The position numbers were made by a program, and so were the translations under genes. This document shows positions 1,390 through 63,405 of a stretch of 64,000 bases of DNA, one piece after another. Numbering within the stretch: the first letter of the stretch is position 1; the number at the start of each line of letters is the position of its first letter. The notes under the pieces are model-generated. The model ran no database searches. It saw nothing but the letters and a program-made list of their open reading frames with translations, and was not told where the DNA came from. This DNA is from Macrostomum lignano. Lineage: Eukaryota. Where the stretch lies: contig NIVC01001677.1 in NCBI GenBank assembly GCA_002269645.1, forward strand, positions 187,586 to 251,585, written 5' to 3'.

Positions 1390-2919
1390 GTAAGGAAAGC
1401 TCTGCTTAGGTCAAAATCAAGTCTTTACAAAAATAGGCGGTCTGCTTAAGATGAAAACTGCAGCAGTGCTTTTGAAAGGGAAAGGCAGGTGGATATGAGA
1501 TGAGGAGAGGGGAGTTTTTGTTCCCAGCGGCCTACTTATCAATTATATATACGAGCGTAGTTACCAGGTACTTCTCTTCCTCTATTAATTCTATCTGTTG
1601 CGATGTGATCAGTGTGACGCAGTTGAGTCTCCTCTCTCTGAGCTCTCTTTCTATCTCTCCCGCTCCGTTGGGCGTCTGTTTTTGTCTCGATTTTTTTGGG
1701 AAAGGAAGGAACGAAAGGTTGATGCTAAAGCTTTAGAGAAGTGGAAAGAGAGAGTGAGTGGCGGGAGGTGGCCGACATGGGGGGGGGACGGTCGCGGTAC
1801 CTTGATGGCGGCGGTGGGGGTGTTCTTTCGTGCGATTCCAATGCAACAACAGTTATAGCAGCCTAACCAACCGGGACCAAGCGGCCCGCAGCTTGCAGCG
1901 CAAATGCAGGCACATACTGTGTGGCTCTCTGGGGAATTTCATGGCATTCGCATTAAACTGACAGCAAAATCGTGTGCATGTGCACCTTCCACCGGCCTGT
2001 CTGCTTGCCTGCCAGTGCTTGCAGAAATTCTGAAGCGAGGTGATGTGCCCGCAGCACCTGCGACTATCACACGTATTGGGGTCTGAGTGAGACACTTTCT
2101 AAGGTCTTGAATGCAAGCGCACACGGGACAGGATAGGAAAGAGATGGAGAGAGTTAAACAGGTTTCAACTTCCGGTTGGGCTTGCTTGCCGTAGCAATTG
2201 GTTCTTTGCAGATATCTGGTCGAAGAGGGTTTTGTTTTAACAACTGAACCTTTGGTAGAGCCTTGACAAGCCGGGCATTTCATGCAGAATCTGACACCGT
2301 TCACACTGCTTTTCTGTTTCTTCTTTTTTCTCTCGGCTTTTTTCCTGCTCTAACGTACGCAGCTTCTCAAAGTAGAAGTAACACTGCTGCCTCGTCATCA
2401 CCTTCTGCAGTTTCTGCAGTTTCCCCTGTTTACTTAATTGCTCGCACTGGAGATTCAGGGGGGGGGGGGCGCATGGATACGCAGCACACTTACAGAAATC
2501 TGTGCTCGGGAAGGGCTTATAACAGCTCTAGTGCTGCGACTGTCTTTAATTATTGCTTGAAAGCAGAAAAACTAAGAATAATGAGGCTCAATTCCATATG
2601 GCTCTTGTCTTCTTCTTTTTCTGTTTTTTTATTTGCAACTGGTTTCTTCTGCACTTCACCTTTATAGTCTGTTTTTCGGTACTGCTCTGCTCCCTGCACT
2701 ATTCCTTGTAAATAATGGTTTTTTGGAATTGTCATGACCCACTGCTGGCTCTCCCTCTCTCGTGAAACTCCCAATTCGAACTTCCCCCAAAGGACAATAT
2801 GATTTAACCTGAAAACTGCGAGATCAAACAAGTCGCTTGCTTTGGGAAAGAAAAATAATTAGTAATAAAGTTGGAAAAGTTCAAGTGTAATGTCGCTCAA
2901 GCAATGTTTTCCTTTGCAG

Positions 2920-5900
2920 CTGACACGGCCAATTATTCTCAGCCGAAGGGTCCGCACGAGCCCTACGACGCTCGACCACCGGTTTATTCGAGCTTTCACG
3001 CCGAGCACTGCGCAGAATCGTTAACGGCTGTGCTTCGCTCCAATCCCGATCGGGTGGCGGAGTTTTGCGACCGGTTCCGGGGTAGACGGCTGCCACAGGC
3101 TCTTCGACAGTTCGTGTGGCGAGAGGGCCTGTTTAAGGCCGAGAGGAAGCGCAGCGGGCAATGGTGGGCCCTTGCTCGAGCTAGATGTCTATGGCCTGGG
3201 TGGCGTGCCTTAGATGGGTGTGGCTTTATGAGCCTGATGTCTATGGCCTGGGTGGAGTGGCTTTAATTGGGCTGTGGCTTTATGAGCCTGATGTCTATGG
3301 CCTGGGTGGCTTGGCTTTATGAGCCTGATGTCTATGGCCTGGGTGGAGTGGCTTTAATTGGGCTGTGGCTTTATGAGCCTGATGTCTATGGCCTGGGTGG
3401 AGTGGCTTTAATTGGGCTGTGGCTTTATGAGCCTGATGTCTATGGCCTGGGTGGCTTGGCTTTATGAGCCTGATGTCTATGGCCTGGGTGGCTTGGCTTT
3501 ATGAGCCTGATGTCTATGGCCTGGGTGGCGTGCCTTAGATGGATGTGGCTTTATGAGCCTGATGTCTATGGCCTGGGTGGCGTGCCTTAGATGGATGTGG
3601 CTTTACGAGCCTGATGTCTATGGCGTGGGTGGCGTGCCTTAGATGGATGTGGCTTTATGAGCCTGATGCCTATGGCCTGGGGTGGCGTGGCTTAGATCCA
3701 GAGGTGAGTCTAATACTTATGAAACATCTCGTAGACAATTCTGTGGATTAGGGTGGATTCCGTAAGTTTAAACGTGGATTATGTGGATTCCGTAAGTTAA
3801 AACCCTTATCATATGTGCTGTATAACGATGTTTGATAGTTCCGGGACGGATATACACGTAGGCGCTTGTTCTACTCCGTGACTGTAATTTTAATTAGCTT
3901 CCAGACGTGGATGCATCGTGACTGACTGTTCACCCTGCTGTCCGGGTTTTTAATTAATTAAAACTGTGCTGTCCGTCTCTAGTGCCCGTAAGAATTGGCA
4001 ATTCAAAATGGCAACTATTCAATTCTACACTCAGTTCAGTTTTCATTTATTGATCTTTGCATTTATAGGAGAAGAAAAAGTCGCAAATGAAGTACTTTTA
4101 GGCCGGTTTCTGGGGGGACGGGGGATATTGAAGTGAGCGAATTCTCATTCTCATTCCTCCGAGGGAATTTAGAAATTGCGTTGGGGAAACGGGTGACCAC
4201 CATGGACCGCTAAACCCCCGGACCCTGCTAAACTTTGCATTTATTAACGTTTTTGTTGTCGTTTGCATGGATGCTCTTATGTGCTGGCGCCCCTGGTGCT
4301 GGCGCCCCTGGTGCTGGCGCCCCTGGTGCTGGCGCCCCTGGTGCTAAAGCCCCTGGTGCTAAAGCCCCTGGTGCTAAAGCCCCTGGTGCTAAAGCCCTAT
4401 GATACAAAATCCTGTCTAGGCCTGTTCAAAAGCAGCCAATGATCTCTATGCTGCAAACAGTGGAAGTGAAACTCCGCTTCCAGTCCAGGCGGGGGGGGGT
4501 CCATGACTTCACGGGGAGCCACCGAGCCGCGGGACCAATTTGTCAACTGCTTGTGCCAAGACCAATTCCTTTGAAAAGTGCATTTCATGATGGAGGAGGC
4601 TGTCCTTACCCCACCTAGATTGATTGCGCCAAAGCCAACTAAACGTTCAATTTAAAGCCGAACATTTGTCCCAATTCTTTTCAGGAATGTGGAGCGATTC
4701 TTTCGCGAACGATTCGGCAAAACGGTTGCTAGGGGCGTCGGCGAGCTGAAAATTAAACGGGCAACTCAATCGCCGATCAACAACCTTCTGGAGAATGCAG
4801 TTATTGAGGTTCGGAGTCTGGGGAGGCTGGAATGACTGATGAAGAAGTGATGGAGGCTCTATTACTATATAGTATTGCTTCTCTTTGATTAATAAAAATC
4901 GATTCGGTGCAGCTTATTTGAACTTGAAATTTCATTTTGGACCCAACTTTCCTAATTTACTGTTTTCTCGCATTTCGCCTTTCTCCTCTGCAGATGTGTC
5001 CGATATACTCCAGTTATGTTTCCAATCCACCCGATATGAACTGATCTCTCTTAACCTCTATGATCTACTATCTCCTCTCCCCCTTACTCTTATACCAATC
5101 TATATTGCTCATCTCTCACCCTCTTTCCTCCTAACCTTAACATTTTTATTCTCCATCTCACCTCTCCCCTCTACTCTCTCGCCTCTCCTCTCTCACCTCT
5201 CCTCTCTCCCCTCTCCTCTCTCCCCTCTCCCCTCTCCCCTCTCACCTCTCCTCTTTCCCCTCTCCTCTCTCGCCTCTCCTCTCTCACCTCTCTTCTATCA
5301 TCTCTCCTCTCTCCCCTCTCCTCTCTCCCCTCTCCCCTCTCACCTCTCCTCTCTCACTTCTCTCTCACTTTTCCTCCCTCACCTCTCCTCTATCACCTCT
5401 CAACTCTCACCTCTCCGCTCTCCTCCCTCACCTCTCCTCTCTCACCTCTTCTCTCTCACCTCTCCTCTCTCACCTCTCCTCTCTCACCTCTCAACTCTCC
5501 CCTCTCTTCTCGTCTCCTCTCCTATCAGCTTCTCCGTCTACCCTTATCCTCGTTTATTTCTCTCTCCTTTCACTTTTCACCCCTCTCTTCAATCCAATCT
5601 ATCTCTTCTCCCCTTTGCCCTTTTGTCTTCCCTTTTTCCCACTCCTTATCTAATCTACCCTCTCTTCTCTACACCTCCCCCTATTTGACCTATACTATAA
5701 CATCAATAAGGTGAAAATCTGCGCCGACCTTCGCAATCTGTCCCTTCCGCTTCCCTCTCCAGTTTTTATTTTCGCGTTATCACTTCCCGATTCGGCACCG
5801 CAGCCAGTTTCTGCATTCTTGATAATCCCAAACCTCTGGATTGTTTATTATTTTCTAATCCTTATCTATCTGTCTTCTCTCTCGCTTTTGCAAAATGTAA

Positions 5901-8900
5901 AACTCCAATAGGCAAGCCTCGGTCCTTACCTCTCTGTCCACTTCTTGATGCTCCTCTGTCTGATCCCAGAAAGACGCGGGGTCAGTCAGGTCGTGGACGC
6001 ATGCCTGACAGGGAATATTTTCCCATGGGATTTCGGCTTGGTAGGAGAAAATTTCGTTGCGCAATTTTGTCTGCCATCGGGGATGAAGCTGTCTGATAAG
6101 GTGCTTTGAAATCCCCCTTTTAGAAGGGCCTGGAGGTTGATGCGGATTTCCATTTTCTTCAAAAAAGTTTTCTCAGAATATGCACAGCCTCGATCAGAAT
6201 AAGGGGCGGCGATCTAAAGTAGAGAGTTGCTGGTCAAGTACCTCTGGTCCTTTGGGGAATTTATCTGAAGTTATTTTGGGTTCTTAGTTGATTTCGGGTG
6301 TGGGTTAGTTGAGTTCGGGTGTGGGTTAGTTGAGTTCGGGTGTGGGTTAGTTGAGTTCGGGTGTGGGTTAGTTGATTTCGGGTGTGGGTTAGTTGATTTC
6401 GGGTGTGGGTTAGTTGATTTCGGGTGTGGGTTAGTTGATTTCGGGTGTGGGTTAGTTTATTTCGGGTGTGGGTTAGTTGATTTCGGGTGTGGGTTAGTTG
6501 GATGATTTTGGGTGTGGGTTAGTTGATTTCGGGTGTGGGTTAGTTGGATGATTTCGGGTGTGGGTTAGTTGATTTCGGGTGTGGGTTAGTTGGATGATTT
6601 CGGGTGTGGGTTAGTTGATTTCGGGTGTGGGTTAGTTGGATGATTTCGGGTGTGGGTTAGTTGATTTCGGGTGTGGGTTAGTTGGATGATTTCGGGTGTG
6701 GGTTAGTTGATTTCGGGTGTGGGTTAGTTGATTTCGAGTGTGGGTTAGTTTATCTCGCGTGTGGGTTAGTTGATTTCGGGTGTGGGTTAGTTGATTTCGG
6801 TTTTGGCTTAGTTTATTTTTTGTGTTTATAGATCGTCCTCACCATATACAATCCCATTTACAGACATACGAAAAGACCAGCGCCACAAAGGAGCTCAACA
6901 ATTCTCTGTTCCTCACTGAGGCTGTTCGAGTTCTCAACGTGCTGTACGTGTACGACCGCAGCTATGAGCCATTTCTCATCCTGTGGCTGGTGCCACTTCA
7001 GGTGGCCTTCAGAGACGAGGCGAGCGCCACAGACTTGGGTGAGCTAGAATTCTCTGCCATAGTTTCTGATGCTCAAATTGGTACTATAAAGCGAAATGAG
7101 GTGAGCAATGAGGCGTCATGAGATTAGAAAAATGAGGCCCCATGAGATGAGCAATGAGGTGCCATAAGGTGAACAATGAGGCGCCATGAGGTGAGCAATG
7201 AGGTGCCATGAGGTGAGCAATGAGGCGCCATGAGGTGAGCAATGAGGCGTCATGAGATTAGAAAAATGAGGCGCCATGAGATTAGAAATGAGGCGCCATG
7301 AGGTGGGCAATGAGGTGCCATGAGATTAGCAATGAGGTGCCATGAGATTAGAAATGAGGCGCCATGAGATTAGAAATGAGGCGCCATGAGGTGGGCAATG
7401 AGGTGCCATGAGATTAGCAATGAGGCGCCATGAGATTAGCAATGAGGCGCCATGAGATTAGAAATGAGGCGCCATGAGATTAGAAATGAGGCGCCATGAG
7501 ATTAGAAATGAGGTGCCATGAGATTAGAAATGAGGCGCCATGAGATTAGAAATGAGGCGCCATGAGGTGGGCAATGAGGTGCCATGAGGTGAGCAATGAA
7601 GCGCCATGAGGTGAGCAATGAGGCGCCATGAGGTGAGCAATGAGGCGCCATGAGGTGAGCAATGAGGCGCCATGAGGTGAGTAATGAGGCGCCATGAGGT
7701 GAGCAATGAGGCGCCATGAGGTGAGCAATGAGGCGCCATGAGGTGAGCAATGTCCGCAAAAACTGTCAGGACAAAAGTCTCAATAAGTCTCATGCAAAAA
7801 GACAATCCTATTATTGCACGCATTTACACATCTAAGTGTGAGACCCGGCAACCCTCCACTGTCACTCCGGGCCTTATAATAACTAATAAAAGGCCAAGTG
7901 AGGTCAGCCGAAGCTAAGCAGCTTAGTTTTTTTGTTATAAATTTCGTCGCGGTGGGTAACAGCGGTGGAAGAGATTCCAACTATAACGACTGTATTCTCT
8001 GCCTGCCTGCCCTGTCAATCACTGCAGGGCTGCCCCACATGTGTGTGTTATATTAAACTATGCAGTGCTTACTTGCACTTAGAAAACCATGACTCACTTA
8101 CAGGGGGGGGGGTACTCATACACTTCTCAAAAAACGATTCTATTGTCTGGCAGTCAAGTGCGGATTAGCGAGTGTTTTATTGTCTAGAACTGGGGGGCGC
8201 TGGATCGGAAAGCAAGAAGCAGTTGCTGGTGAAGCGGTGAGGGGCAGGAAATGCACGTGACTGAAAGACTAATATCTTGTCTATACTTCCTATAAAGAAT
8301 GGATTGAAAATATTCAATTTGAGAGAAAGAAGAAAGAGAGTAGTAGAGATAAGATAGTAAAGATGAGAGAGAGTAAAGTTGAGAGTAGATTAGAGAGTAG
8401 AGTAGAGGGGTAGAGAGTAAAGTTGCGAGTAGAGATAAAAGAGTAGAGATGAGAGAAAGCAGATTTTAGAATAGAGAGTAGAGATAAGAGAGTAGAGATG
8501 GGAGAGAGTAGATTTTTTAGTAGAGAGTAGAGATGAGAGAGTAGAGATGGGAGAGAGTAGATTTTTTAGTAGAGAGTAGAGATGAGAGAGTAGAGATGGG
8601 AGAGAGTAGATTTTTGAGTAGAGAGTAGAGATGAGAGAGTAGAGATGGGAGAGAGTAGATCTAAGAGTAGAGAGTAGAGATGCGAGATTAGAGATGGGAG
8701 AGAGTAGATTTTTTAGTAAAGAGTAGAGATGAGAGAGTAGAGATAGGAGAGAGTAGATTTTTGAGTAGAGTAGAGATGAGAGAGTAGAGATAGGAGAGAG
8801 TAGATTTTTTAGTAAAGAGTAGAGAGCAGAGAGTAGAGATAGGAGAGAGTAGATTTTTGAGTAGAGAGTATAGATGAGAGAGTAGAGATAGGAGAGAGTA

Positions 8901-11900
8901 GATTTTTGAGTAGAGAGTAGAGATGAGAGAGTAGAGATGGGAGAGAGTAGATCTAAGAGTAGAGAGTAGAGATGAGAGAGTAGAGATGGGAGAGAGTAGA
9001 TTTTAAAGTAGAGAGAATATGGGGGAGAGAGTTAGGGAGAGGGAGAGAAGTAATTTAGAGATATTTTATTCCAAAGGGAAACCACACCGGACATTTATAT
9101 CTACCCTGCATGCGGTAAAGAAGTACAGAGAGCGCTTATCTAAATCTGTAATCAATGGGAGTCGACAGACAACCAGCGCGCATCAAAGGTGCTTCAAAAC
9201 TTGATTGTCAAACTCTGCTGGGCGAACGGCGTTAATTAACACAGAACTGATGCTCGCGGTCTCTGCACGCGGCTTGATACCGAATCAAGAGGCTGAGTAA
9301 CGGGATGCTGGGGGAAACTGCACAGCCAGCTTGATTGATGGCGATGAGTCACACGATCTTCGTGGCTTTGAAGTCGGTCTCATAATAAAAAACCGAGCTT
9401 AAAACCGAAGCCTAGCTTGTTAGAGGATTGCGGATAGGGATACAGGTAGGGGGGGAGCTTAGGTAAGGTTGCGTGGATGAGATCCGGGTCGTTGGAGCAT
9501 TAATCCATGATTCGGTTCGGGGCGGGGCGGGGTTGTGACGCAACCGCTGCATACGAGACTCTTTGTCCTCAAACTGTATACTGACTGTTCACTTGATCTC
9601 TTTTGTAACCTGTTCAGGTTTTTGTAAAGCCGCCTTTTGAAATATGATTTTTTTCTATTCATTTTCATTTATTGCCGATTTCAAAGCATCTATGTTTATA
9701 TTGAGATAGGAGCGTAAAAGAAAGGGATTCTGTATTTCTTAGCATGCTAAAAAGGTAATCCTATATTGATTTCACAGAATATTGTGCACTGGATTCATTG
9801 ATTCTGTACATTATTGGATTCTGTACACATGACTTTGTACACATGATTCTTTAAACATTCTGTACGCATGGTTCTGTACACATGACTTTGTACACATGAT
9901 TCTTTAAACATTCTGTATTCATGGTTCTGTGCACATGACTGTACATATGACTGTACACATGATTCTTTAAACATTGTGTACACATGGTTCTGTACACATG
10001 ACTTTGTAAACATGATTCTTTAAACATTCTGTACACATGGTTCTGTGCACATGACTGTACATATGACTGTACACATGGTTTTGTACACATTATCATGTAC
10101 ACATGACACATGCACACATGTACATATGACTGTACACATGGTTTTTACACATTATTATGTACACCTGACTGTACATATGACTGTACACATGGTTTTGTAC
10201 ACATTATCATGTACACATGACACATGCACACACGTACATATGACTGTACACATGGTTTTTACACATTATTATGTACACCTGACTGTACATATGACTGTAC
10301 ACATGGTTCTGTACACATGTTTGTTGACTGTACACGTGACTGTACACATGATTATTTGATATTATCTTATATCATATCAAATATCATAGCATCTTAGCGG
10401 ACCTCGAGAAAGCCATACTAATCTTGCTTATCTGTGCAGCATCCGAGGTTGAAGCAAGTAATACAACAGATTATCCTGGATACAAAGAAGTAAATGAGAG
10501 TCATCTGAGGATCCCCTGGGGACTGGAGTAAAAGGTGACGAGTGATAGGGGCTGTAGCCAATCGCTAATTGCTAGATCAAGATAAGGAATGCCAAAGGAT
10601 GTTGAACTTTCGTCATTCATTTGTGGAAACCTGAGCTTACCATTTAATTCTCAATGCACCATAAGAATAATACGAACTATTGATTATCTACAGTTCTGTC
10701 CCATTCCTAATAAAGTCGGACCAAGCCGCAGATTTTTCGTGACCTGAACAACCGACCAACTCCCCTCGTGTGCCCTGAAGGGATTTTTTTGTAAGAAAAA
10801 AATGGGGGAAGAATTAATTAATGAGCGAAGATAAAAAAGTGTTTTGCACCGCTTATTTTTTTGTGTCTTGGTAGGTTACAAAGTTAAGACACAAGAAGAC
10901 ATTTATTTGAGAAGTTTTGTCAATTTTTGATCCACAGACACTAGACTCCTATCGCAGACACAACAGACTCCTATCGCAGACACAACAGACTCCTATCGCA
11001 GACACAACAGACTCCTATCGCAGACACAACAGACTCCTATCGCAGACACAACAGACTCCTATCGAAGACACAACAGAATCCTATCGCAGACACAACAGAC
11101 TCCTATCGCAGACACAACAGACTCCTATCGCAGACACAACAGACTCCTATCGCAGACACAACAGACTCCTATCACAGACACAACAGACTCCTATCGCAGA
11201 CACAACAGACTCCTATCGCAGACACAACAGAAATCTATCAAAGACACAACAGACTCCTATCGCAGACACATCAGAAATCTATCGAAGACACAACAGACTC
11301 CTATCGCAGACACAACAGAATCCTATAGCAGACACAACAGACTCCTACCGCAGACACAACAGAATCCTATCGCAGACACAACAGACTCCTATCGCAGACA
11401 CAACAGACTCCTATCGCAGACACAACTAAACCCAAGAATACATCATGAAACCAATTCCAGGTGAGCAGGTGTACGAGCTGGCGATGCTGCTCAGCCTGCT
11501 GCACCAGGGCACATATCCGGGATGGTCAACCGTGTTCGCAATTGCCGAGCGAAGCCTCGAGCTGGTTAAGGAGGCCGACCCAGAGTTTCACGCCCACCTG
11601 ATCGACATCGCCACAAAGAACATCGACGCCAATTTGAAAGATTTCATGGTCCAAGTGATTCACGAAGAATTCGAACGGGCCCAGAGTCTGCTCCGGACAC
11701 ATTCGGACAGTCCGAGGCAGCAGAGGCTGTCAAAAAATGTGCTCGTTAATCCGGCTATCTTCTTGCGCAAGTGGATCGGAGAGGTGAGGCCACTGGGTTG
11801 CTGTGGGGTTAATGAAGGCAGGTTAAATGTGAAGGTCGTAGGAGGTGTCAAGACAGAAGTCAATCTAGGGGTCAGTGAAGTGGTTAATTGAGGGGTCAAT

Positions 11901-13151
11901 TGGTGTTTGATAAAGTATTGTAATTAGCGTAGGAGACATATCGTAGAAAGACATAAAGATAAAAGACGAGGGTTAGTGCCAATAGTGCCCTTAGCGAGCA
12001 TCTTTGGAGGGGTTGGAGAGGTCACTGGAGGGGATAGAGAGGTCCACTGGAGGGTAGGAGAGGTCACTGGAAGGGTTGGAGACGTCACTAGAGGGGATAG
12101 AGAGGTCCACTGGAGGGTAGGAGAGGTCACTTGAATTGGGGGAAGGGCACTGGAGAGGTCAATGGAGCTGGGGTCACTGGAGAGATCAACGGATAGGTCA
12201 CTGGAGAGGTCAATGGAGGGGTCACTGGAGAGGTCAATGGAGGGGTCAATGGAGAGGTCAACGGAAGGGTCACTGGAGAGTTTAATGGAGGGGTCACTAG
12301 AGAGTTCAACAGAGGGGTCACTAGAGAGTCAAGTGAGTTTTTCAGTTCAAGGTCAGGAGCAGGCTTTGCATACCATTTATTAATCCGTGGTCTTTTTATT
12401 GCACGGGCAATCAGCCCTCAAATAAGATCGTCGCTTTTTTGTCTACTTCCCCAGTTCGTCCCAAACTAACGAGTATATACGAGTGTATTTAAGCTTCTAG
12501 CTCAGATCTGGGAAATCTCTCTATGCAAAAGCTGCGCCCCCCCCCTGATATTGATCTCATTGCGGAGTTAGCCTAGAGGCAGGGCGATTCCCCAGGGTGA
12601 CTGTAGCCCAAAATTTCAAAACAGCCGACTGACTTCCCTCCGAGCTGGACGTATTTCCACGAAACGAATTTGTTTATTGCCAGAGGCCAAATTAAACTGC
12701 TCTGAGGAGTTCTGTTTCAACTGATTCTTTACGCGTGCGATGCTCTGATGGCTCTTAAAGGGACATGATCTACACCTTCCCTGGTCTATACCCTCATTGT
12801 CTACTCGCTGTCCTCTCTACTTTATCTCCTCCCCCACTTCTTTCTACTCTCTCTCGTCTCTTCCCTCTCTCTTCTCTCTTCTCTCTCTTCTGTACTGTCC
12901 TCTTTTTCTTTTCTCTCTTTCTCCCCTCTTCTCTCCTCTCCCCCCTCTCTTCTCTCCCCTGTCTTCTCTCCCCTCTCTCCTCTCTCTTCTCTACCCTCTC
13001 TTCTCTCCCTCTCTTCTCTCCCCTGTCTTCTCTCCCCTCTCTCCTCTCTCTTCTCTACCCTCTCTTCTCTCCCTCTCTTCTCTCCCCTGTCTTCTCTCCC
13101 CTCTCTCCTCTCTCTTCTCTACCCTCTCTTCTCTCCCTCTATTCTCTCCCC

Positions 13152-13187
<36 letters not shown>

Positions 13188-13188
13188 T

Positions 13189-13219
<31 letters not shown>

Positions 13220-13230
13220 ATTCTCTCCCC

Positions 13231-13266
<36 letters not shown>

Positions 13267-13276
13267 TCTCTTCTCT

Positions 13277-13338
<62 letters not shown>

Positions 13339-13371
13339 ATTCTCTCCCCTGTCTTCTCTCCCCTCTCTCCT

Positions 13372-13419
<48 letters not shown>

Positions 13420-13437
13420 CTCCTCTCTTCTCTCCCC

Positions 13438-13477
<40 letters not shown>

Positions 13478-13569
13478 ATTCTCTCCCCTGTCTTCTCTCC
13501 CCTCTCTCCTCTCTCTTCTCTACCCTCTCTTCTCTCCCTCTATTCTCTCCCCTCTCTCTCCTCTCTTCC

Positions 13570-13662
<93 letters not shown>

Positions 13663-13674
13663 ATTCTCTCCCCT

Positions 13675-13729
<55 letters not shown>

Positions 13730-13738
13730 CCCTCCCCT

Positions 13739-13819
<81 letters not shown>

Positions 13820-19800: not shown

Positions 19801-22800
19801 TCTTTTAGCTATAGAATTGTGCTTTTATTACATTTATAAAAGTTAATATATTATTGTTTATTAAATATTACACTATTATTCATTTCCAATAAGCTGTACT
19901 AAAACGTAAAAAGTTGCTAATTTATGGCTACTTTATTATTAATTCGCTTATCCTGTATAAAAGGTTAAACGGTTAAACCTATCCGTCCTATAGGCAACAG
20001 TATTATAAAACATCGAACTTTAAACGCATAAATTGTATATCAGATTAATTAAATAGCGAAAAAAATGAAACGCAATGAAAGAATAAGAATTTCCATGTGT
20101 GTTACAGAAAATTTACGTTAAAGATTTACGTATGGATCGCAGTAAAATAATTTGGAAGTCTGCAATTGACAAATAATAGATCGACATTCAGCATGGCGAT
20201 ATTTTAAAAAAGGTGTATCTCGCGATGCGTTGAAACAAAAAAATATTGTGTCCGTTTTACTGAACTTATTGATCCTTTCAATACACTGAAAATCACGTTG
20301 AAAAAAATATTTTTTAAATATCACTAATAATCATTTCTGCAAAAACGAAGATAAAAATTTCATATCGAAATTTCGACGTCGAATGAAGGTTCAAACGACT
20401 ACTCATTTGTCGCAAGTTTTTGAAAGGCGAATATCGACGTCATTTCGACGTGATTTTTACCGCCGGGTAGTTGCACTAGCTGAGACATAGATAATTGCAC
20501 TAGCTGAGACATGGTTAATTGCACTAGCTGAGACATGGATAATTGCACTAGCTGAGACATAGATAATTGCACTAGCTGAGACATGGATAATTGCACTAGC
20601 TGAGACATAGATAATTGCACTACTAGCTAAGACATGGTTATTGCACCAGCTGAGAAAGGGATTATTTTACTATCTAAGAAATTTATTATAATAAAAATAT
20701 TAAGCAAAAGGTTGCGTCATTTCAAACGTGTCAAATGTCACGGCTTACGGGGGGAATTGCTGAGATGTCAAGGCAAATAAGATTCACATTAATAATTTTT
20801 GTTTCTTGTTTATTTGGTCACAATATTGTTAGTTGGCACAAAAAAACAAATCTTCGATACATATCGGCAGTCTACCAGCATACAATTCTTGATAAAAACT
20901 AATATTCGATGCATATCGATAGAAAGCCGTGAATTTAGAATTTATAAAAGATTATTGAACTTTTTTAATACATATCGGTAGATAGATAATCGCTAAATCA
21001 AAAGAATGCTCAAATGACAGTCTACAAAAAAGTCCAAATTTCTAAAAAACAACCACATTCTAATTTTATTACTGTTAGTACAAAAATGCATTTTTTATCA
21101 CATTTTTCTCAAAACACCCGTCAGAAACTACTGGCGAGCTCGTTCTCCGAGAAGCATCTGACAGTTGAAATTCGAAGGCGCTACGGAGCCGTGGGAATTA
21201 ATTCTCATTTGCTTCGCCAGCGGGGCGAGTTGAAACCAATCGAGGACCAAACCGAGTTTCGAACGTTGCAGCTGCCCTATGATGATAAATGCGATTTTCC
21301 GGAGGTCGATGTGGCTCAATACGATTTGGAGTCTGACATGGGCGCCCTGCCCTACCTGCTGGTGCAGCTGCGCTATGAGCCCCCCGACTCAGATCCGGGT
21401 TTGTTGGGCACTCTGGGGATTGAGCACTTTGGGAATTGAGCACTCTGGGGATTGAGCACTCTGGGAATTGAGCACTCTGGGGGTTGAGCACTCTAAAAGG
21501 GTTGAGCACTCTGGGGATTGAGCACTCTACAAGGGTTGAGCACTCTGGGGAATGAGCACTCTATCGATTAAGCACTCTGGGGATTTAGAACTCTAAAGAT
21601 TGAGCAGTCTGGGAGTTGAGTACTCTGGGGATTGAGCACTCTGGGGATTGAGCAGTCTGGGAGTTGAGTACTCTGGGGATTGAGCAGTCTGGGAGTTGAG
21701 TACTCTGGGGATTGAGCACTCTGGGAATTGAGCACTCTAGGGATTGAGAACTCTACACGGGTTGAGCACTCTGGGGATTGAGCACTCTGGGGATTGAGCA
21801 CTCTGGGGATTGAGCACTCTGGGGATTGAGCACTCTGGGATTGAGCACTCTAAGGATTGAGTACTCTGGGGATTGAGCACTCTGGGGTTTGAGCACTCTA
21901 AGTATTGAGCGCTCTAAGGATTGAGAACTCTGAGGATTGAGCACTCTAGCAATTGAGCATTATGTATCAACTCACTTATGCCCATCGTCCCGCAGTAATT
22001 CTCGGCTGGGCCAGAGTGACCCCCTACGAGCGCCTTAGCAACGGTCAGTTCGACGCTGTCAAGCGATTCCGCATCACGTGCCCGATCTATCCCGGACACC
22101 TGCCGGACGATCCGCTCGGCTGGCAGCCCGGGGAGCTGCCGGACTTTGACGGTGGGATATAATGGAAGAAGGGGGAAAGGAAAGATAAGGGGAACATGAT
22201 GGAGAATAAAGGGATGGGAATAAAGGATCGGATTGAGGAAATGTGATCAGGAAAGGAAATGGGATCAGGATGGGGAATGGGATCAGGATGGGAAATAGGA
22301 TCAGGATGGGGAATGGGATCAGGATGGGGAATGGGATCAGGATGGGAAATGTGATCAGGATGGGAAATGCGATCAGGATGGGGAATGAGATCAGGATGGG
22401 GAATGGGATCTCAGGATGGGAAATGGGATCAGGATGGGGAATGGGATCAGGATGGGAAATGTGATCAGGATGGGAAATGCGATCAGGATGAGGAATGGGA
22501 TCAGGATGGGGAATGGGATCAGGAAGGGAAATGCGATCAGGATGGGAAATAAGATCAGGATGGGAAATAAGATCAGGATGGGAAATAAGATCAGGATGGG
22601 AAATAAGATCAGGATGGGAAATGGGATCAGGATGGGAAAAGGGATCAGAATGGGAAATGGGATCAGGATGGGAAAAGGGATCAGAATGGGAAATGGGATC
22701 AGGATGGGAAAAGGGATCAGAATGGGAAATGGGATCAGGATAAGAAATGAGAAGCATGAGGAAGGTAGGAATAGGTGTTAATATGATCAGGTAGACAGGA

Positions 22801-25800: not shown

Positions 25801-28800
25801 GGATTGAACCAGTGGGGGCAAACGAACGGTTTTATTGATCAACCCACAGGGTCGCCTACTCACCGGCGGTCATCAGCTCCGGCTTCGAGAGCACGCCTCC
25901 ATGGTGGCAGCGGGCCAGCAGCGGGCCTCTCTCGCCACCAGCTTGGACTCCATCAAGCAGGCCAAGTCTCTGCCCTGCGTGACCGGCTTGTTCCGCCTGC
26001 TCCCGCAAAGTGCTCGGCCAATCGACGCTCCGGACTACACCAGCGGCTACTATCGCTCTGAGGAGTGCCGGCCAACGGACGCTGAGCTGCGAGTATTTCG
26101 CGAGCACGACAGATACGAGAGCTACCCGGAGACGTTCGCCCCGTTGGTTAACTATGTGCAGAGCCAGGACACTGTGAAAGTGGCCGCCAATGACTATAAC
26201 CAGGTGTGTTGCAACTCTGTTGATTATCCCTGTCACTCTGTTGATTACTCTTGTCACTCTGTTGATTATCCTTGTCACTCTGTTAAATAATCTTGTCACT
26301 CTGTTGATTATCCTTGTCACTTTGTTGATTATCCTTGGCACTCTGTTGATTACTCTTGTCACTCTGTTGATTATCCTTGTCACTCTGTTGATTACTCTTG
26401 TCACTCTGTTGATTATCCTTGTCACTCTGTTGATTACTCTTGTCACTCTGTTGATTACTCTTGTCATCTGTTGATTACTCTTGTCACTCTGTTGATTAAT
26501 CTTGTCACTTTACTGTTCATTGATCTTGTCACTCCACTGTTCATTGATCTTGTCACTCTACTGTTCATTGATCTTGTCACTCTTCTGTTGATTAATCTTG
26601 TCACTCTTTTTGATCAATAATCTTGTCACTCTTCTGTTGATTAATCTTGTCACTCTTTTTGATCAATAATCTTGTCACTCTTTCGATGATTAATCTCGTC
26701 ACTCTTGTCATGATTAATCTTGTCACTCTTGTCATGATTAATCTTGTCACTCTACTGTTGATCAATCTTGTCTCTCTAATAAATATTCTTGATGTTACTC
26801 CAACAAAAGGTGATGGCCTACGTTCCGACTCGAATGGACCCGGCAAGGTGCCTGCCGCCCAACACGGCCCCGAGAGCAATGCCGCAGGAGCTGCACTTTC
26901 ACTATCGGGACTTGTCCGGCGCCTTCGTCCGGCTTGAGGCCGCCTACGGATTGCCGAAGCCAAATTCGGCGGCTTCGGCTGATCTCATTTTTGGCGTTCT
27001 CATGACCATCGTCGGGGCCAAGAAGCTGGAATCCTTGCCTAGCAAAGCTCTGGGCATCGGCTTTGATACCATGGCCGTGTTTGTGCAGTCTGGTAGGGGC
27101 TGGGGTGACCTACTAACCTACAATGTCTAGTAGGGCTGGAGTGACCTACTAACCCTACACTGTCTAGTAGGGCTGGGGTGACCTACTAACCCTACACTGT
27201 CTAGTAGGGCTGGGGTGACTGTCTGGTGGACACTGTCTAGTAGGGTAGGGGTGACTGTCTGGTAGACACTGTCTAGTAGGGTTGGGGTGACTGTCTGGTG
27301 GACACTGTCTAGTAGGGTTGGGGTGACTGTCTGGTAGACACTGTCTAGTAGGGCTGGGGTGGCTGTCTGGTAGACACTGTCTAGTAGGGCTGGGGTGACT
27401 GTCTGGTGGACACTGTCTAGTAGGGTTGGGGTGACTGTCTGGTAGACACTGTCTAGTAGGGTTGGGGTGACTGTCTGGTGGACACTGGCTAGTAGGGTTG
27501 GGGTGACTGTCTGGTGGACACTGTCTAGTAGGGCTTGGGGTGGCTGTCTGGTAGACACTGTCTAGTAGGGCTGAGGCGACTGTCTGGTAGACACTGTCTA
27601 GTAGGGCTGGGGCGACTGTCTGGCAGTGTCTCGTAAGGGACTGCTCAGGGCCAGAAGACTCAGGTAGCCAACCCCACCTCCGCCCCACCCCAGGCGCCGG
27701 CAGGTTCACCCGCCGGGCGGAGCAGCTGAACCCGCGGTCGGACCCAGCCAACACCCTGCTTGTGCAGTTCTTCCGCCTGCCCGGAGTTGCCCATCGCGAC
27801 GGCAAGCTCTTCGAGGGCGAGCAGGAAGTGACGGAGCTGAAGAAAGATCATTTTGTTGCCTGGGCCGTGTGCCCGCTGTTGAACGAGTGAGCAACTTGAT
27901 ATAACTGACTATTTTTGAGTATAAACAAGTGATTATTCAGTAATTTGTTCACCCACTGACTCAGGGAGTACACCTACAATGGCCGTCACCGGGTGCCCGT
28001 GTTCAGCCAGTCCGACTTGCCGCTGACCACCAACAGAGTGCGCACCATCCGCTCTCGGGGCCTGGCTGGCGCGCTCAAGGTTGACGGCGCGCTGGCCACC
28101 CATGTGGTACGCTTGGGGCGATTCTGGGGGGCGATTCTGGGGGGCGATTCTTGGGGGGCGATTCTGGGGGGGGCGATTCTTTGAGGCGATTTTGGGGGGG
28201 CGATTCTTGGAGGCCATTCTTAGGGGTGATTCTTGGGAGGGATTCTTGGGGGGGATTCTCAGGGGGATTCTTAGGGGGATTATTGGGGGGGGATTCTTAG
28301 GAAGATTCCTTGGGGGGATTCTTGGGCGGGGATTCTTGGGGGGTTCTTGGGAGGGGGGTCGAAGCTTGGGAAGGGGCGATTCTTGGGAAGGGGCGATTCT
28401 TGGGAAGGGGCGATTCTTGGGGGGGGGCGATTCTTGGGGGGGCGATTCTTGGGGGGGCGATTCTTGGGGGGCGATTCTTGGAAGGGGCGATTCTTGGGGG
28501 GGGCGCTTCTTGGAAGGGGCGATTCTTGGGAAGGGTCGATTCTTGGGGGGGCGATTCTTGGGGGGGGCGATTCTTGGGAAGGGGCGATTCTTGGGGGCGA
28601 TTCTTGGGAAGGGGCAATTCTTGGGGGCGATTCTTGGGAAGGGGCGATTCTTGGGGGGGGGCGCTTCTTGGAAGGGGCGATTCTTGGGGGGGGGCGATTC
28701 TTGGGAAGGGGTGATTCTTGGGAAGGGTCGATTCTTGGGGGGAGCGATTCTTGTGAAGGGGCGATTCTTAGGGGGGGGCGATTCTTGGGGGGGGGCGATT

Positions 28801-30703
28801 CTTGGGAGGGGCTATTCTTGGGAAGGGGCGATTCTTGGGAAGGGGCGATTCTTGGGAAGGGGCGATTCTTGGGAAGGGGCGATTCTTGGGAAGGGTCGAT
28901 TCTTGGGGGGGGGGAGATTCTTGGGAAGGGGCGATTCTTGGGAAGGGGCGATTCTTGGGGGCGATTCTTGGGAAGGGGCGATTCTTGGGGGCGATTCTTG
29001 GGAAGGGGCTATTCTTGGGAAGGGCTATTCTTGGGAAGGGGCGATTCTTGGGAAGGGGCGATTCTTGGGGGCGATTCTTGGGAAGGGGCGATTCTTGGGG
29101 GCGATTCTTGGGAAGGGGCGATTCTTGGGGGCGATTCTTGGGAAGGGGCGATTCTTGGGAAGGGGCGATTTTCATGGGTAGCAATTTTGGGAGCAATTCT
29201 TGGAGGCGATTGTTGAGGGGGGTGATTTCTCGGGGCGATTTTTCGGTGGGCGATTACCGGAGGTAATTTTTCGTTGGGGTGATTTTCGACGGGCTGAGCG
29301 TAGCGGATTTTTGGCGGAATGATTCCGAAAGAATTCCGGCACTCAGAAAGGATGTTGGCTCTCGGAAGTTCCCAACTAAAATTTATCATTTTTCTGAGCA
29401 AATATTTAACTGCTTTGTGACAACAGGCAACCAGCAGCGCTCTGCTATCGGTGGTCGACGGTCACCTGAGCTACAAGGAGGCTCCAGACAACGCAAAGGT
29501 ATGCGCAGAGCTTCTGGCCTCTCCTTATTGAATTAGCAGTGTAATTAAAACGATTCGAACCCCCGCCCACAAACAGATTCACACCTCTGTTTACGAGCAC
29601 CTGCCCAAGACCACAGCGGCTGACTATCAGCCTGCGATCGACTCTGCTCAACTTGAGCAGTCCAGTTTCGGTCAGAATTGTCAGGAAGCCATCGACAATG
29701 CGATTGTGAGATTCCTGCTGAATATCCTACTGAGCACTCTACCTCTCCCTGCCTCCCACTCTGCACCCTACCTCTCCCTGCCTCCCACTCTGCACCCTAC
29801 CTCTCCCTGCCTCCCACTCTGCACCCTACCTCTCACTGCCTCCCACTCTGCACCCTACCTCTCCCTGCCTCCCACTCTGCACCCTACCTCTCCCTGTCTC
29901 CCTCTCTGCACCCTACCTCTCCCTGCCTCCCACTCTGCACCCTACCTCTCCTTGCCTCCTTCTCTGCATCCTACCTCTCCCTGCTTCCCTCTCTGCATCC
30001 CACCTCTCCCTGCCTACCTCTCCCTGCCTCCCACTCTGCACTCTACCTGTCTCCCTCTCTGCACCCTACCTCTCCCTGCATCCCACTCTGCACCCTACCT
30101 CTCCCTGGCTCCCACTCTGCACCCTACCTCTCCCTGGCTCCCACTCTGCATCCTACCTCTCCCTGCCTCCCACTCTGCACCCTACCTCTCCCTGTCTCCC
30201 TCTCTGCACCCTACCTCTCCCTGTCTCCCTCTCTGCACCCTACCTCTCCCTGTCTCCCTCTCTGCACCCTACCTCTCACTGCCTCCCACTCTGCACCCTA
30301 CCTCTCCCTGCCTCCCACTCTGCACCCTACCTCTCCCTGCCTCCTTCTCTGCACCCTACCTCTCCCTGCCTCCCACTCTGCACCCTACCTCTCCCTGTCT
30401 CCCACTCTGCACCCTACCTCTCCCTGCCTCCCACTCTGCACCCTACCTCTCCCTGGTTCCCACTCTGTATCCTACCTCTCCCTGTCTCCCTCTCTGCACC
30501 CTACCTCTCCCTGCCTCCCACTCTGCACCCTACCTCTCCCTGCCTCCCTCTCACTGCCTCCCACTCTGCACCCTACTCCACCGTCTCCCTGATTAAATAA
30601 GGATAAATTCCCGAACGCTGAGTCCATAATTAACAAATCGTAAACATATTTTCAGAGCGGCACAAAGCGCAATCAGTACCAGCCTCTGTTTGTGCCTGCT
30701 TAA
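2920..30703 (+). CDS. Multi-exon gene: TBC/Rab-GAP-like domain protein with C-terminal C2-like regions (uncharacterised; 5' end uncertain)
   Basis: Exons with GT-AG ends and consistent phases: 2920-3163, 4685-4808, 6864-7038, 11461-11783, 15167-15583, 21125-21398, 21996-22151, 22888-22944, 23459-23624, 24250-24406, 24995-25240, 25850-26203, 26810-27092, 27694(or 27649)-27886, 27965-28106, 29427-29498, 29577-29705, 30656-30703 (TAA). TBC-like motifs: RGRRLPQALRQFVW, FLRKWIGE|GFVGVL..MFYWDQCFL. C2-like beta-rich motifs: PFDVYIDQIRY, LVIRVYTL..VVVGTCVLPIF, LLVQFFRL, FVAWAVCPL. Confidence 0.85.
3183..3697 (+). repeat. Intron 1 minisatellite (core GGCTTTATGAGCCTGATGTCTATGGCCTGGGTGG, ~31-46 bp variants)
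   Basis: Tandem copies start ~20 nt after the donor at 3164. Confidence 0.95.
4281..4397 (+). repeat. 15-bp tandem repeat GTGCTGGCGCCCCTG / GTGCTAAAGCCCCTG
   Basis: About 8 copies in two variant blocks. Confidence 0.9.
5140..5525 (+). repeat. CT-rich low-complexity tandem tract
   Basis: Degenerate CTCTCC/CTCAC units. ORF 4885..5688 is an artefact of this tract. Confidence 0.9.
6285..6812 (+). repeat. 21-bp minisatellite TTAGTTGATTTCGGGTGTGGG (intron 2, 3' end)
   Basis: About 24 copies, some with a GGAT insertion. Ends ~50 nt before the acceptor at 6863. Confidence 0.97.
7095..7752 (+). repeat. 22-bp minisatellite AATGAGGCGCCATGAG(GTGAGC/ATTAGA) (intron 3, 5' end)
   Basis: About 30 copies starting ~55 nt after the donor at 7039. 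Confidence 0.97.
8330..9015 (+). repeat. Purine-rich minisatellite (GAGTAGAGATG..GAGAGTAGATTTT, ~42 bp)
   Basis: Tandem AGAGTAG-based higher-order units. Confidence 0.92.
9800..10352 (+). repeat. TGTACACATG-based minisatellite with higher-order repeats
   Basis: Repeated CTGTACACATGA/GG subunits arranged in longer duplicated blocks. Confidence 0.92.
10935..11427 (+). repeat. 22-bp minisatellite CAGACTCCTATCGCAGACACAA (intron 3, 3' end)
   Basis: About 22 copies ending ~33 nt before the acceptor at 11460. Confidence 0.97.
11860..12335 (+). repeat. Degenerate GGAGAGGTCACT/GGAGGGGTCAAT minisatellite (intron 4)
   Basis: Diverged 12/24-bp units. Confidence 0.85.
12825..13865 (+). repeat. Pyrimidine tract, ~12-bp CTCTTCTCTCCC repeat
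   Basis: About 1 kb of CT-only tandem units. Confidence 0.95.
14465..15060 (+). repeat. Purine-rich 12-bp GGAGGATGGGGA repeat (intron 4, 3' part)
   Basis: Tandem GGAGGATGG units. Confidence 0.93.
15618..16065 (+). repeat. ~50-bp minisatellite CGATACATATCGGTAGTCTACCAGCATACAATTGTTGCTAAAACAAAACT
   Basis: About 9 copies starting ~35 nt after the donor at 15584. Related copies occur at ~20850-20990. Confidence 0.95.
16195..16460 (-). mobile_element. tRNA-derived SINE with a CORE/Meta-like central domain
   Basis: Minus strand: A box TAGCCTAGTGG, B box GGTTCGATTCC, then GTGTCCTTAAGCAAG..CACTTAAC..CAGCTGTAAAATGGGT, similar to SINE central domains. A second copy lies at 52331-52563. Confidence 0.85.
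16868..17097 (-). repeat. 25-bp minisatellite TGGGTCAAGCTGGTCAGGGGCTGAG (last codons and stop of the lectin gene)
   Basis: About 9 copies. The first copy on the minus strand encodes WVKLVRG*. Confidence 0.95.
17074..17823 (-). CDS. Secreted C-type lectin domain + PAN/apple-like domain protein, intronless, nested antisense in intron 5
   Basis: Signal peptide MHLTVLSAIWSAVFLLAIGPVMS. CTLD pattern CPAPF..C..YSW..A..C..GGEL..MWTGL..W..GEP..QNC..D..C..FVCQ. C-terminal Cys pattern SLKACLIRA..C..CCSALYN..ACRL (PAN-like). 249 aa. Confidence 0.85.
   Translation of the reverse strand: MHLTVLSAIWSAVFLLAIGPVMSDQNCPAPFQLHSATRLCLLIESSESYSWCSANRRCDELGGELISSPESIVALLASNLVDNITVDMWTGLTDLGYEVGKNRTGWQRVNGGGEFPRNDSLWCCGEPSDGYQQNCIRFATNRGLGDRACSHLLGFVCQFVKPPAANKSAGYWTPAEFKRTRNDTYYCHEELQPVHSLKACLIRASLCGSRCCSALYNSRLAACRLLQFADAPVDPEIESSPDWVKLVRG
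18290..18670 (+). repeat. 24-bp minisatellite AATTGCACTAGCTGAGACATAGAT (left part)
   Basis: About 16 copies, interrupted at 18672 by a TIR element. Confidence 0.97.
18673..20467. mobile_element. Non-autonomous DNA transposon, ~1.8 kb, 34-bp TIRs (CCCGGCGGTAAAAATCACGTCGAAATGACGTCGA), TA duplication
   Basis: Perfect terminal inverted repeats at 18673-18706 and 20434-20467, with TA on both sides. Subterminal TTCGACGTCGAA repeats. AT-rich interior with no transposase ORF. Confidence 0.9.
20470..20655 (+). repeat. 24-bp minisatellite AATTGCACTAGCTGAGACATAGAT (right part)
   Basis: About 7 copies continuing in register after the transposon. Confidence 0.95.
21405..21958 (+). repeat. 16-bp minisatellite GGGGATTGAGCACTCT filling intron 6
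   Basis: Starts at the donor (GT at 21399) and ends ~37 nt before the acceptor. Confidence 0.97.
22245..22745 (+). repeat. 18-bp minisatellite GGGATCAGGATGGGAAAT in intron 7
   Basis: About 28 copies. Confidence 0.96.
22982..23391 (+). repeat. 35-36-bp minisatellite TGAATGATGGGATCTCTAATTAGGGATTCATACCT in intron 8
   Basis: About 11 copies. Confidence 0.97.
23636..24215 (+). repeat. 12-bp minisatellite ACTCCCCCATTG filling intron 9
   Basis: Starts ~12 nt after the donor and decays toward the acceptor. Confidence 0.96.
24440..24935 (+). repeat. 36-bp minisatellite TTGACCTCAGTATCTAAATAGATTGACTGACCTCAG in intron 10
   Basis: About 13 copies. Confidence 0.96.
25255..25790 (+). repeat. 30-bp minisatellite GAGTGCAGTCTGGTAGGTTCTGGTAGATTT in intron 11
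   Basis: About 14 clean copies followed by degenerate ones. Confidence 0.97.
26212..26770 (+). repeat. 21-bp minisatellite TCTTGTCACTCTGTTGATTAC filling intron 12
   Basis: Starts ~8 nt after the donor and ends ~40 nt before the acceptor. Confidence 0.97.
27086..27625 (+). repeat. 36-bp minisatellite GTCTAGTAGGGCTGGGGTGACTGTCTGGTAGACACT filling intron 13
   Basis: The first unit overlaps the exon 13 donor. About 15 copies. Confidence 0.96.
28113..29290 (+). repeat. G-rich 12/17-bp minisatellite GGGGCGATTCTT(GGGAA) in intron 15
   Basis: Starts 6 nt after the donor. All ORFs over it are artefacts. Confidence 0.97.
29735..30590 (+). repeat. 29-bp minisatellite CCTACCTCTCCCTGCCTCCCACTCTGCAC in intron 17
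   Basis: About 29 copies starting ~30 nt after the donor. Confidence 0.97.
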
Positions 30704-39674: not shown

Positions 39675-39868
39675 CTGAAATGTTGAATTAGTCAGATAAC
39701 ACGGGCGCTAATTACAGGGAAATAATTAAATTCTGGCCATAGACAATTAGACTCTGTGCATATAGTACATAGAACTGCTAGCAATACAAAATAAATGAAT
39801 TTTAATAAGCAAACTTTTGACAGTCTAAGAACCTGAATAGGGCCTTTCATTGCTTACTTAAACTATTG

Positions 39869-40263: not shown

Positions 40264-40449
40264 AAATACTAGCGTCATGAACAAGATTGTGATGTTCGTC
40301 GCTGCGTGCGCTTTGCATTTTTATCCATCCAAATATCTGCGTATTTATCCTACTATATACTCATAGCCTATTAGTTTTTATATCTTATCTGTTGTATAAA
40401 TTTATCCACCTTTTACCTACTCTATAATCTATATACTATTAGATCTATA

Positions 40450-41143
<694 letters not shown>

Positions 41144-41250
41144 GTGGCGACACTGTCGCCAAAACTCAAGAATGAAATTGATTTATATTAATTTTGCTGT
41201 TAAGACCTGTCAAGGCTGTTGTTTTCAGCTTACTTTAAGAACTTAACAAT

Positions 41251-42275: not shown

Positions 42276-42440
42276 GCGCAACCTATGGATTCACCCGGCC
42301 GTTTCTATTGGCAACACACACATGTAAGTTGCTATTGGACGGAATAGTAGTCACGTGACTGCTCTCAGCCAATAGCGACTTACATGTGCGTGTTGCCATT
42401 AGAAACGGCCGGGTGATTCCCAAGGTTGCGCATGTATGCA
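42276..42440. mobile_element. Palindromic MITE-like element
   Basis: Arms TCACCCGGCCGTTTCTATTGGCAACACACACATGTAAGTTGCTATTGG / CCAATAGCGACTTACATGTGCGTGTTGCCATTAGAAACGGCCGGGTGA with few mismatches; central GTCACGTGAC. Confidence 0.75.
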
Positions 42441-42670
42441 GTCCCTACTTACAGAAAACAAACTGAAACTGGCAAGACGGACTATTCTTGGGGTAGTAAT
42501 TGCTAACATTATTCACTGGATGCGGGCTTAACAGTAAATGATGATATTAACACAACCACAATGAGGTGAAGGAAAGACATGAAGGAAAGACAGACTAGAC
42601 AAGAGTATGACAAAATCCAACCCTTCCACCCTATCCTTTTATAAAGTAATTGAAGAGAAAGTAGAAATAG

Positions 42671-53009: not shown

Positions 53010-63405
<10,396 letters not shown>

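Follow-up and report, generated by a model that had tools for sequence, protein, structure and literature searches.

Why should eight consecutive introns of one gene, each occupied by a different minisatellite, be of nearly the same length? The question is raised by a 64,000-nucleotide stretch of the Macrostomum lignano genome (assembly GCA_002269645.1, contig NIVC01001677.1, positions 187,586 to 251,585 of the forward strand; hereafter the window, with coordinates counted from its first base), in which introns 6 to 13 of a plus-strand host gene, here called gene A, lie in its 3' half and converge on about 600 bp (Table 1). A first-pass annotation of this DNA had ascribed the convergence to a bimodal intron system, with minimal introns inflated to a set size by tandem amplification in situ, either through a length-limited mechanism or through selection on exon spacing. 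The ~600-bp pattern proves to be real and locally significant; a set intron size has local statistical support and rests essentially on one gene.

By their sequence the eight introns qualify as ordinary spliceosomal introns of the U2 type, with lengths, coordinates and splice sites exactly as first annotated. All eight run from GT to AG, the donor reads GTGAG in four and the acceptor CAG in six, and the splice motifs reported for M. lignano are a GT[G/A]AG-like donor and a CAG-like acceptor (PMC8629364). Their removal joins nine exons into one open frame of 642 amino acids, retention of any one of them leads to an in-frame stop within 1-28 codons, and junctions 7 to 13 agree with predicted proteins of M. 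lignano. For intron 13 the alternative acceptor proposed earlier is present at 27647-27648, likewise in frame, and would shorten the intron to 556 bp. The Heterobilharzia americana ortholog aligns unbroken over the junctions of introns 10 and 11, and its exon ends coincide with the positions of both introns; because these positions are common to the two species, at least introns 10 and 11 are ancestral to flatworms and not new insertions.

Each of the eight introns is filled by an array of its own. Tandem Repeats Finder (TRF) reports one array per intron with periods of 16, 18, 34/35, 12, 36, 30, 21 and 36 bp in introns 6 to 13, in agreement with the unit sizes noted at first inspection, that of intron 8 being 34/35. 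With 11-38 copies and a length of 409-583 bp the arrays fit the definition of minisatellites (unit of 10-100 bp, total of 0.1 to several kb), and they make up 71-96% of the respective intron, depending on how the degenerate edges are counted. They start at -5 to 79 nt relative to the donor, leave 27-138 nt free in front of the acceptor and thus take up almost the entire dispensable interior as far as the core splice signals, and the length that remains after subtraction of the array, 41-184 bp with a median of 70, is about the size of the minimal intron 14 of 78 bp. Profiles of identity to the consensus and the sequence itself reveal variant units grouped in blocks, periods of higher order and edges that have degenerated; such blocks and edges usually mark ongoing slippage or unequal exchange, and may do so here. 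The matches reported by TRF lie between 79 and 95%. How long an array is does not depend on its unit (Spearman -0.2, for units of 12-106 bp), copy number varying approximately as the inverse of the unit. Hairpin-driven slippage finds no backing in the DNA folding z-scores of the eight arrays, which range from -2.4 to +2.3 and display no common tendency.

The units had been described as unrelated, and this holds in so far as neither a core motif nor a terminal sequence is common to the arrays; it fails for introns 11 and 13, which share a core derived from a splice junction, and weakly for intron 6. No 13-mers are shared apart from this core, shared 8-13-mers are limited to GA/CT-rich low-complexity arrays, to a 24-mer array split by an insertion and to the same core, and short k-mers occur near chance level. 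The lack of any motif or terminal sequence common to the arrays rules out a transposon family. More broadly, the uniform size class of the introns and transposon activity in the window, where an element with terminal inverted repeats (TIRs) and a TA duplication is inserted at 18673-20469, might suggest that each intron is a copy of some mobile element with an internal variable repeat, either like an introner or a miniature inverted-repeat transposable element (MITE). Introns 6 to 13, however, possess neither TIRs nor target-site duplications nor shared terminal sequences, the gap between donor and array is in most of them only 5-46 nt, which leaves no room for element ends, the units are unrelated except for the junction-derived core, and intron positions 10 and 11 are ancestral, all of which makes such an origin scarcely credible.

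The shared core points to a possible source of the arrays. The 15-mer GTGCAGTCTGGTAGG spans the junction of exon 13 and intron 13 (27083-27097), with ten exonic bases followed by GTAGG, and recurs 1.8 kb upstream as the core of the 30-bp unit from which the intron 11 array is built; 13 copies with at most one mismatch are found there between 25313 and 25721, compared with 0.02 expected by chance. Because its unit core is the exon 13/intron 13 junction, intron 11 carries at least 13 decoy copies of a functional-looking donor. The array of intron 13 begins at 27088 within exon 13, its units carrying the junction motif GTCT(G/A)GTAGG, and in the array of intron 6 three variant units contain an 11-mer version of the junction sequence. 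As read from the sequence, the junction core shared by introns 11 and 13 is direct evidence that arrays can be seeded from the gene's own sequence, and it suggests that junction sequences seed arrays and may be copied between introns.

A related situation is known from amphioxus, where minisatellite-like duplications over exon/intron boundaries, termed 'mirages', occur in Adh3 and in globin genes with decoy splice signals, normal splicing and edges that escape homogenisation (PMC3087553). The intron 13 array is like a mirage as it starts in exon 13 and contains the donor, and it is the only one in which the unit includes exon end plus splice site and adjoins its own boundary. A scan with k=13 does not support boundary duplication as the origin of all arrays of the run: only the intron 11 array matched an exon/intron boundary, and this a distant one (27083-27097). 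Amphioxus mirages moreover comprise few copies next to the copied boundary and go along with no common intron size, whereas here the junction 15-mer has also been amplified 1.8 kb away and the arrays fill whole introns.

Growth of short, ancestral introns through tandem amplification in situ, as proposed in the first-pass annotation, thus appears well supported by the ancestral positions of introns 10 and 11, by the remainder of minimal-intron size and by the junction-seeded arrays.

Whether the common size exceeds chance can be asked of eleven introns of the window that hold a single array and have confirmed ends, namely introns 6 to 13 and 15 of gene A, intron 1 of the adenylate cyclase gene (ADCY) and the intron of a nested THAP-domain gene, the last two having exactly the lengths of 629 and 655 bp first assigned to them. 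These single-array introns cluster at 616 +/- 56 bp, and seven of the eleven lie within 588-629 bp, a clustering tighter than the other arrays of the window predict: resampling of lengths from those arrays together with the observed flanks gives P=1e-4, and a lognormal distribution fitted to the eleven introns gives P=5e-4. The eight arrays of introns 6 to 13 have a coefficient of variation (CV) of 0.13 (0.08 with relaxed boundaries) as against a range of 110-1838 bp for the other 31 arrays. Among the seven tightest introns the standard deviation of intron length is 15, that of array length 26-57. A size mode as a property of the arrays themselves was considered and rejected, as arrays in multi-array introns are broadly distributed in size and intron length is tighter than array length.

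It may be argued that there is no set point at all, minisatellites being typically about 0.5 kb long with a wide spread and the eight having become alike by chance and through shared local conditions such as gene, expression, replication, chromatin or array age. The median of the other arrays, 498-539 bp, does equal the in-run mean of 520-547 bp, a run of eight equally uniform arrays reaches only P=0.022 when array order is permuted to correct for the choice of the run, tightness beyond a cluster with a standard deviation of 56 bp is not significant once this cluster is granted (P=0.06), arrays outside the run show no significant spike of their own, and exceptions exist at 361, 1470 and 1500-5500 bp. 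Against this stands the resampling, which yields seven of eleven introns within 588-629 bp approximately once in 10,000 trials, as well as the fact that single-array introns of two other genes belong to the same size class, that two arrays split by later insertions each re-join to about 600 bp and that the spread of TRF match percentages does not suggest arrays of obviously the same age. We regard this account as unlikely, though it is the main rival.

If the size is set, the array could be measured by a ruler intrinsic to amplification or to chromatin, for example about three nucleosomes, that holds either array or intron at ~600 bp. Such a ruler would account for array lengths unrelated to the unit (over units of 12-233 bp), for the tight cluster of intron lengths and for the split arrays that re-join to ~600 bp, yet non-coding arrays outside the run span 110-1236 bp within this window and within gene A as well, one coding array reaches 1838 bp, and the hairpin propensity of the units is too inconsistent for a common structural driver to be visible. 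As arrays in other contexts are broad in size, with no spike that reaches significance, an array-intrinsic limit, and with it the length-limited amplification first suggested, is disfavoured. From the coordinates of introns 6 to 13 the exon start-to-start distance is 571-960 bp with a CV of 0.15 and the mid-to-mid distance has a CV of 0.11, compared with 0.10 for intron length; exon spacing being no more regular than intron length, nothing speaks for it in preference to intron length as the controlled quantity. A ruler of either kind, in amplification or in chromatin, is improbable.

The size distribution is also less simple than the two classes originally envisaged. That introns free of repeats are minimal holds for the 78-bp intron 14, the one verified among the four minimal introns first cited, but fails for the repeat-free ADCY intron of 361 bp, over whose junction the Guanylate_cyc Pfam profile aligns without break and whose length is intermediate between the 78-bp and the ~600-bp classes. 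Intron 15 of gene A, filled by a single array, lies outside the ~600-bp class, and introns 1 to 5 of the same gene measure 1.5, 2.1, 4.4, 3.4 and 5.5 kb, introns 1 to 4 with two to four arrays each and intron 5 with several arrays and two insertions. With introns of 361 bp, 1470 bp and several kb, the system is not strictly bimodal and has no hard limit.

Intron 5 may have grown by insertion. Copies of its 51-bp unit near both ends make it look like a former single-array intron of ~0.8 kb which was split by an insertion of ~4.7 kb. The inserted block contains a minus-strand open reading frame (ORF) at 17074-17919 with a C-type lectin domain (Pfam E=6e-7). The block also carries the TIR element, 1.8 kb long and without a long ORF, which separates two units of a 24-bp minisatellite precisely at their boundary and leaves parts of 384 bp and 211-272 bp that add up to 595-656 bp; the element is probably a non-autonomous one of Tc1/mariner type.

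Arrays of such uniform length could in principle be produced by the assembly, with true arrays that are longer or variable having been collapsed or normalised during assembly or polishing. Of the published PacBio/Canu/Pilon assembly of M. lignano 64% of bases are error-free according to REAPR, with repeats as its main difficulty (PMC5730564), and an older M. lignano assembly contains several near-identical copies of gene A. Arrays of 0.5 kb are, however, far below the PacBio read length, arrays of 0.1-1.8 kb have been assembled in the same window, exon frames are intact over all junctions, and the arrays consist of clean variant blocks with higher-order structure and not of a blended consensus. 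Because the internal structure of the arrays is clean and nearby arrays are of many sizes, an artefact is very unlikely.

We therefore return to the reading of ancestral short U2-type introns, each enlarged in situ by a minisatellite of local origin, with the ~600-bp class arising through a length-dependent cost, to which we would give an even chance of being correct. The locus would be one sample of the genome-wide proliferation of tandem repeats known in M. lignano. In a once-short intron a small dispensable core would be replaced by one array that would extend as far as the splice signals. A strong mutational tendency towards expansion would be countered by a cost tied to total intron length, which would lie most plausibly in the splicing efficiency of short-exon/short-intron units, such that introns would pile up near a ceiling of ~600 bp. 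Introns that have left this regime, namely those at the 5' end and those that received insertions, would grow to several kb and collect several arrays.

Several observations weigh against this reading. Gene A also contains introns of 1.5-5.5 kb and one of 1470 bp with a single array, by which any ceiling is soft or context-dependent. The at least 13 functional-looking donors tolerated in intron 11 are awkward to reconcile with strong selection on splicing, and the splicing cost is a step that we only infer. Among arrays outside the run a size spike is not significant (scan P of 0.25 with strict and 0.07-0.39 with relaxed boundaries). Finally, gene A alone supplies nine of the eleven introns with a single array, and the cluster could thus be a local effect.

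The reading can be extended to a second intron class of ~600 bp throughout the M. lignano genome, with ancestral minimal introns each filled by a different, locally seeded minisatellite, with a total length, as opposed to copy number or unit size, that homeostasis keeps near a common value, be it through a splicing ceiling or a chromatin ruler, and with junction sequences serving as seeds that are copied between neighbouring introns; in this general form it is doubtful. Were it true, the class would be a rare case in which intron length itself, and not sequence, is visibly controlled, with unrelated, fast-evolving repeats as interchangeable filler, and limits of intron size, the switch between intron and exon definition and feedback of chromatin spacing on gene structure would become testable in a transgenic model animal. 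If the class is not genome-wide, the locus is a vivid local example of a known repeat load. Intron-filling arrays with decoy donors, as in intron 11, help to account for the difficulty of assembling and annotating M. lignano genes.

Eukaryotic genomes generally combine a peak of minimal introns with a broad class of long ones. The window resembles this pattern in its sharp ~78-bp class; its second class is narrow, at ~600 bp, and consists of introns with one minisatellite each and not of heterogeneous unique or transposable-element (TE) sequence. Huff, Zilberman and Roy are said to have described in 2016 introners of Micromonas and Aureococcus, numerous introns of a single length for which a connection with nucleosome spacing was proposed. 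Introners are a single transposon family that creates new introns, whereas here the sequences differ, the positions are ancestral and element termini are lacking. Wasik and colleagues reportedly documented in 2015 the richness of the M. lignano genome in tandem and simple repeats. Simple and tandem repeats make up 15% of this genome and are a cause of its assembly difficulty (Wudarski et al. 2017, PMC5730564), and the mean intron length given in the M. lignano literature is 1.1 kb. This repeat literature concerns the same organism and sequence class, without introns filled by single arrays, a ~600-bp class or an array length independent of the unit.

Closest in nature are the operon spacers of M. 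lignano, raw intercistronic distances being multimodal with a peak of ~100 bp after subtraction of repeats, which was read as neutral repeat accumulation (Ustyantsev & Berezikov 2021, PMC8629364). Like introns 6 to 13, they are short functional spacers in transcribed DNA inflated by repeats; unlike them, they are intercistronic and not intronic, no repeat-size quantum was reported, and TEs and tandem repeats were pooled (PMC8629364). The Caenorhabditis elegans minisatellite CeRep25B resides to 75% in introns, as one dispersed family with a proposed regulatory motif (PMC4039745), and hence differs from a different array in each intron; size convergence was not reported for it. In the literature searched, to which the 2015 M. 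lignano genome paper does not belong, we found no account of introns each filled by a different minisatellite, of a ~600-bp intron class or of a junction-derived array copied between introns. Intronic minisatellites and the repeat richness of M. lignano are known already; the intriguing part is the set intron size, with its local statistical support.

Table 1. Coordinates of gene A, its introns and arrays, and further features of the window.
Feature	Position	Strand	Description
Gene A	2904..29699	+	at least 16 exons within the window
Gene A exons 1-5	~2904-3160, 4686-4830, 6900-7040, 11440-11786, 15160-15583	+	from ortholog mapping
Intron 5	15584..21124	+	5541 bp; 51-bp-unit array 15610-16105, further copies 20842-20949 near acceptor
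TIR element	18673-20469		1.8 kb; 51-nt terminal inverted repeats (CCCGGCGGTAAAAATCACGTCGAAATGACGTCG...), TA target duplication
Intron 6	21399..21995	+	597 bp
Intron 6 array	21404-21959		16-bp unit TTGAGCACTCTGGGGA; ~34 copies, 93% of intron, begins 5 nt after donor
Intron 7	22152..22887	+	736 bp
Intron 7 array	22198-22749 (relaxed 22174-22752)		18-bp unit GGATGGGAAATGGGATCA; ~30 copies; variant-unit blocks and 36-bp higher-order repeat
Intron 8	22945..23458	+	514 bp
Intron 8 array	22982-23390		34/35-bp unit; ~12 copies, 95% matches
Intron 9	23625..24249	+	625 bp
Intron 9 arrays	23640-24104 and 24128-24222		12-bp unit CCCCCATTGACT and related 11/22-bp array; jointly 93% of intron
Intron 10	24407..24994	+	588 bp
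Intron 10 array	24486-24903 (relaxed 24483-25000)		36-bp unit; degenerate copies reach both splice sites
Intron 11	25241..25849	+	609 bp
Intron 11 array	25258-25796		30-bp unit GTCTGGTAGGTTCTGGTAGATTTGAGTGCA; unit core GTGCAGTCTGGTAGG
Intron 12	26204..26809	+	606 bp
Intron 12 array	26214-26777		21-bp unit; different unit variants in its two halves
Intron 13	27093..27693	+	601 bp
Intron 13 array	27088-27623		36-bp unit; first unit reaches 5 nt into exon 13 and includes donor CTG/GTAGGG (exon/intron)
Intron 14	27887..27964	+	78 bp; repeat-free minimal intron, read from sequence; frame runs on into EYTYNGRHRVPVF
Intron 15	28107..29576	+	1470 bp; single array of 1056-1141 bp, 15/17-bp units; outside ~600-bp class
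Mucin-like ORF	31806-35537	-	single, 1243 amino acids; Thr/Pro/Gln-rich; hydrophobic C-terminal segment
GATA-type zinc finger ORF	37897-39675	-	intronless, 592 amino acids; single finger CVQCGTDYTPVWKRD...CEQC
THAP-domain first exons (two, separate)	41272-41526 and 59173-59330	-	
ADCY intron 1	53538..54166	+	629 bp; array 53576-54056, 33-bp unit, 105- and 233-bp higher-order periods
Nested THAP-domain gene intron	58529..59183	-	655 bp; array 58595-59102, CT-rich 5/15-bp unit
ADCY intron in catalytic domain	60474..60834	+	361 bp; no tandem repeat

The product of gene A is a conserved metazoan protein, and M. lignano UniRef proteins match the spliced protein at 84-100% identity, by which the DNA is identified as that of M. 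lignano. Other copies of gene A are the loci of UniProt A0A1I8FQH8, A0A1I8IYJ3 and A0A1I8F4T8. The exon map was obtained by tblastn and ortholog mapping; bryozoan (Bugula) and gecko orthologs map exons 1 to 5 with none missing between them, which confirms the intron numbering used from the outset, and a candidate exon at 14016-14117 was dropped after this mapping. The N-terminal half resembles a TBC domain by eye only, Pfam giving no significant family and no TBC match for the N-terminal exons, while the C-terminal half has a weak C2-like match (weak Pfam PI3K_C2). The three UniRef proteins of M. lignano that correspond to gene A (P0001-P0003) are all frameshifted or chimeric, and their names (A2M domain, RNA helicase, SE6L1) have nothing in common. 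Introns are skipped or falsely called in them, a conserved 22-amino-acid piece of exon 5 being, for example, wrongly spliced out, which shows how annotation suffers from arrays and assembly errors, and P0003 appears to read the opposite strand of the 3' end of the downstream mucin-like ORF as the tail of gene A.

This mucin-like ORF comprises ~120 five-residue repeats of the PTTAQ type and ~27 ten-residue repeats of the TTDPLTTTRT type. Its coding repeats, on the minus strand, account for the 15-bp and 30-bp 'arrays' found at 32455-34292 and 34520-35341, and arrays within 32455-35341 were consequently dropped from the set of non-coding minisatellites. The GATA-type ORF that follows has long Gln/Ala/Ser-rich tracts and resembles GATAD2/p66. 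The second THAP gene lies within intron 2 (5.6 kb) of the adenylate cyclase gene, and the THAP domain that it encodes is interrupted by its array-filled intron.

Tandem repeats account for 36% of the window with standard TRF settings and for 47% with relaxed ones; the orthologous Heterobilharzia locus of 33.8 kb contained no tandem repeats. Arrays like those of introns 6 to 13 are widespread in the non-coding genic DNA of the window, and within it the arrays look concentrated in transcribed or intronic DNA. The region 41200-53500 is a 12-kb AT-rich intergenic stretch (GC 0.28-0.38) with almost no sizeable tandem arrays, unlike the genic parts. Tetranucleotide microsatellites are present as (TCTA)259 at 293-1329, with 99% purity, (ATCT)177 at 40443-41143, (CTGT)90 at 61021-61374 and (GTCT)64 at 62458-62714, the (CTGT)n tract starting 6 nt after an adenylate cyclase donor site.

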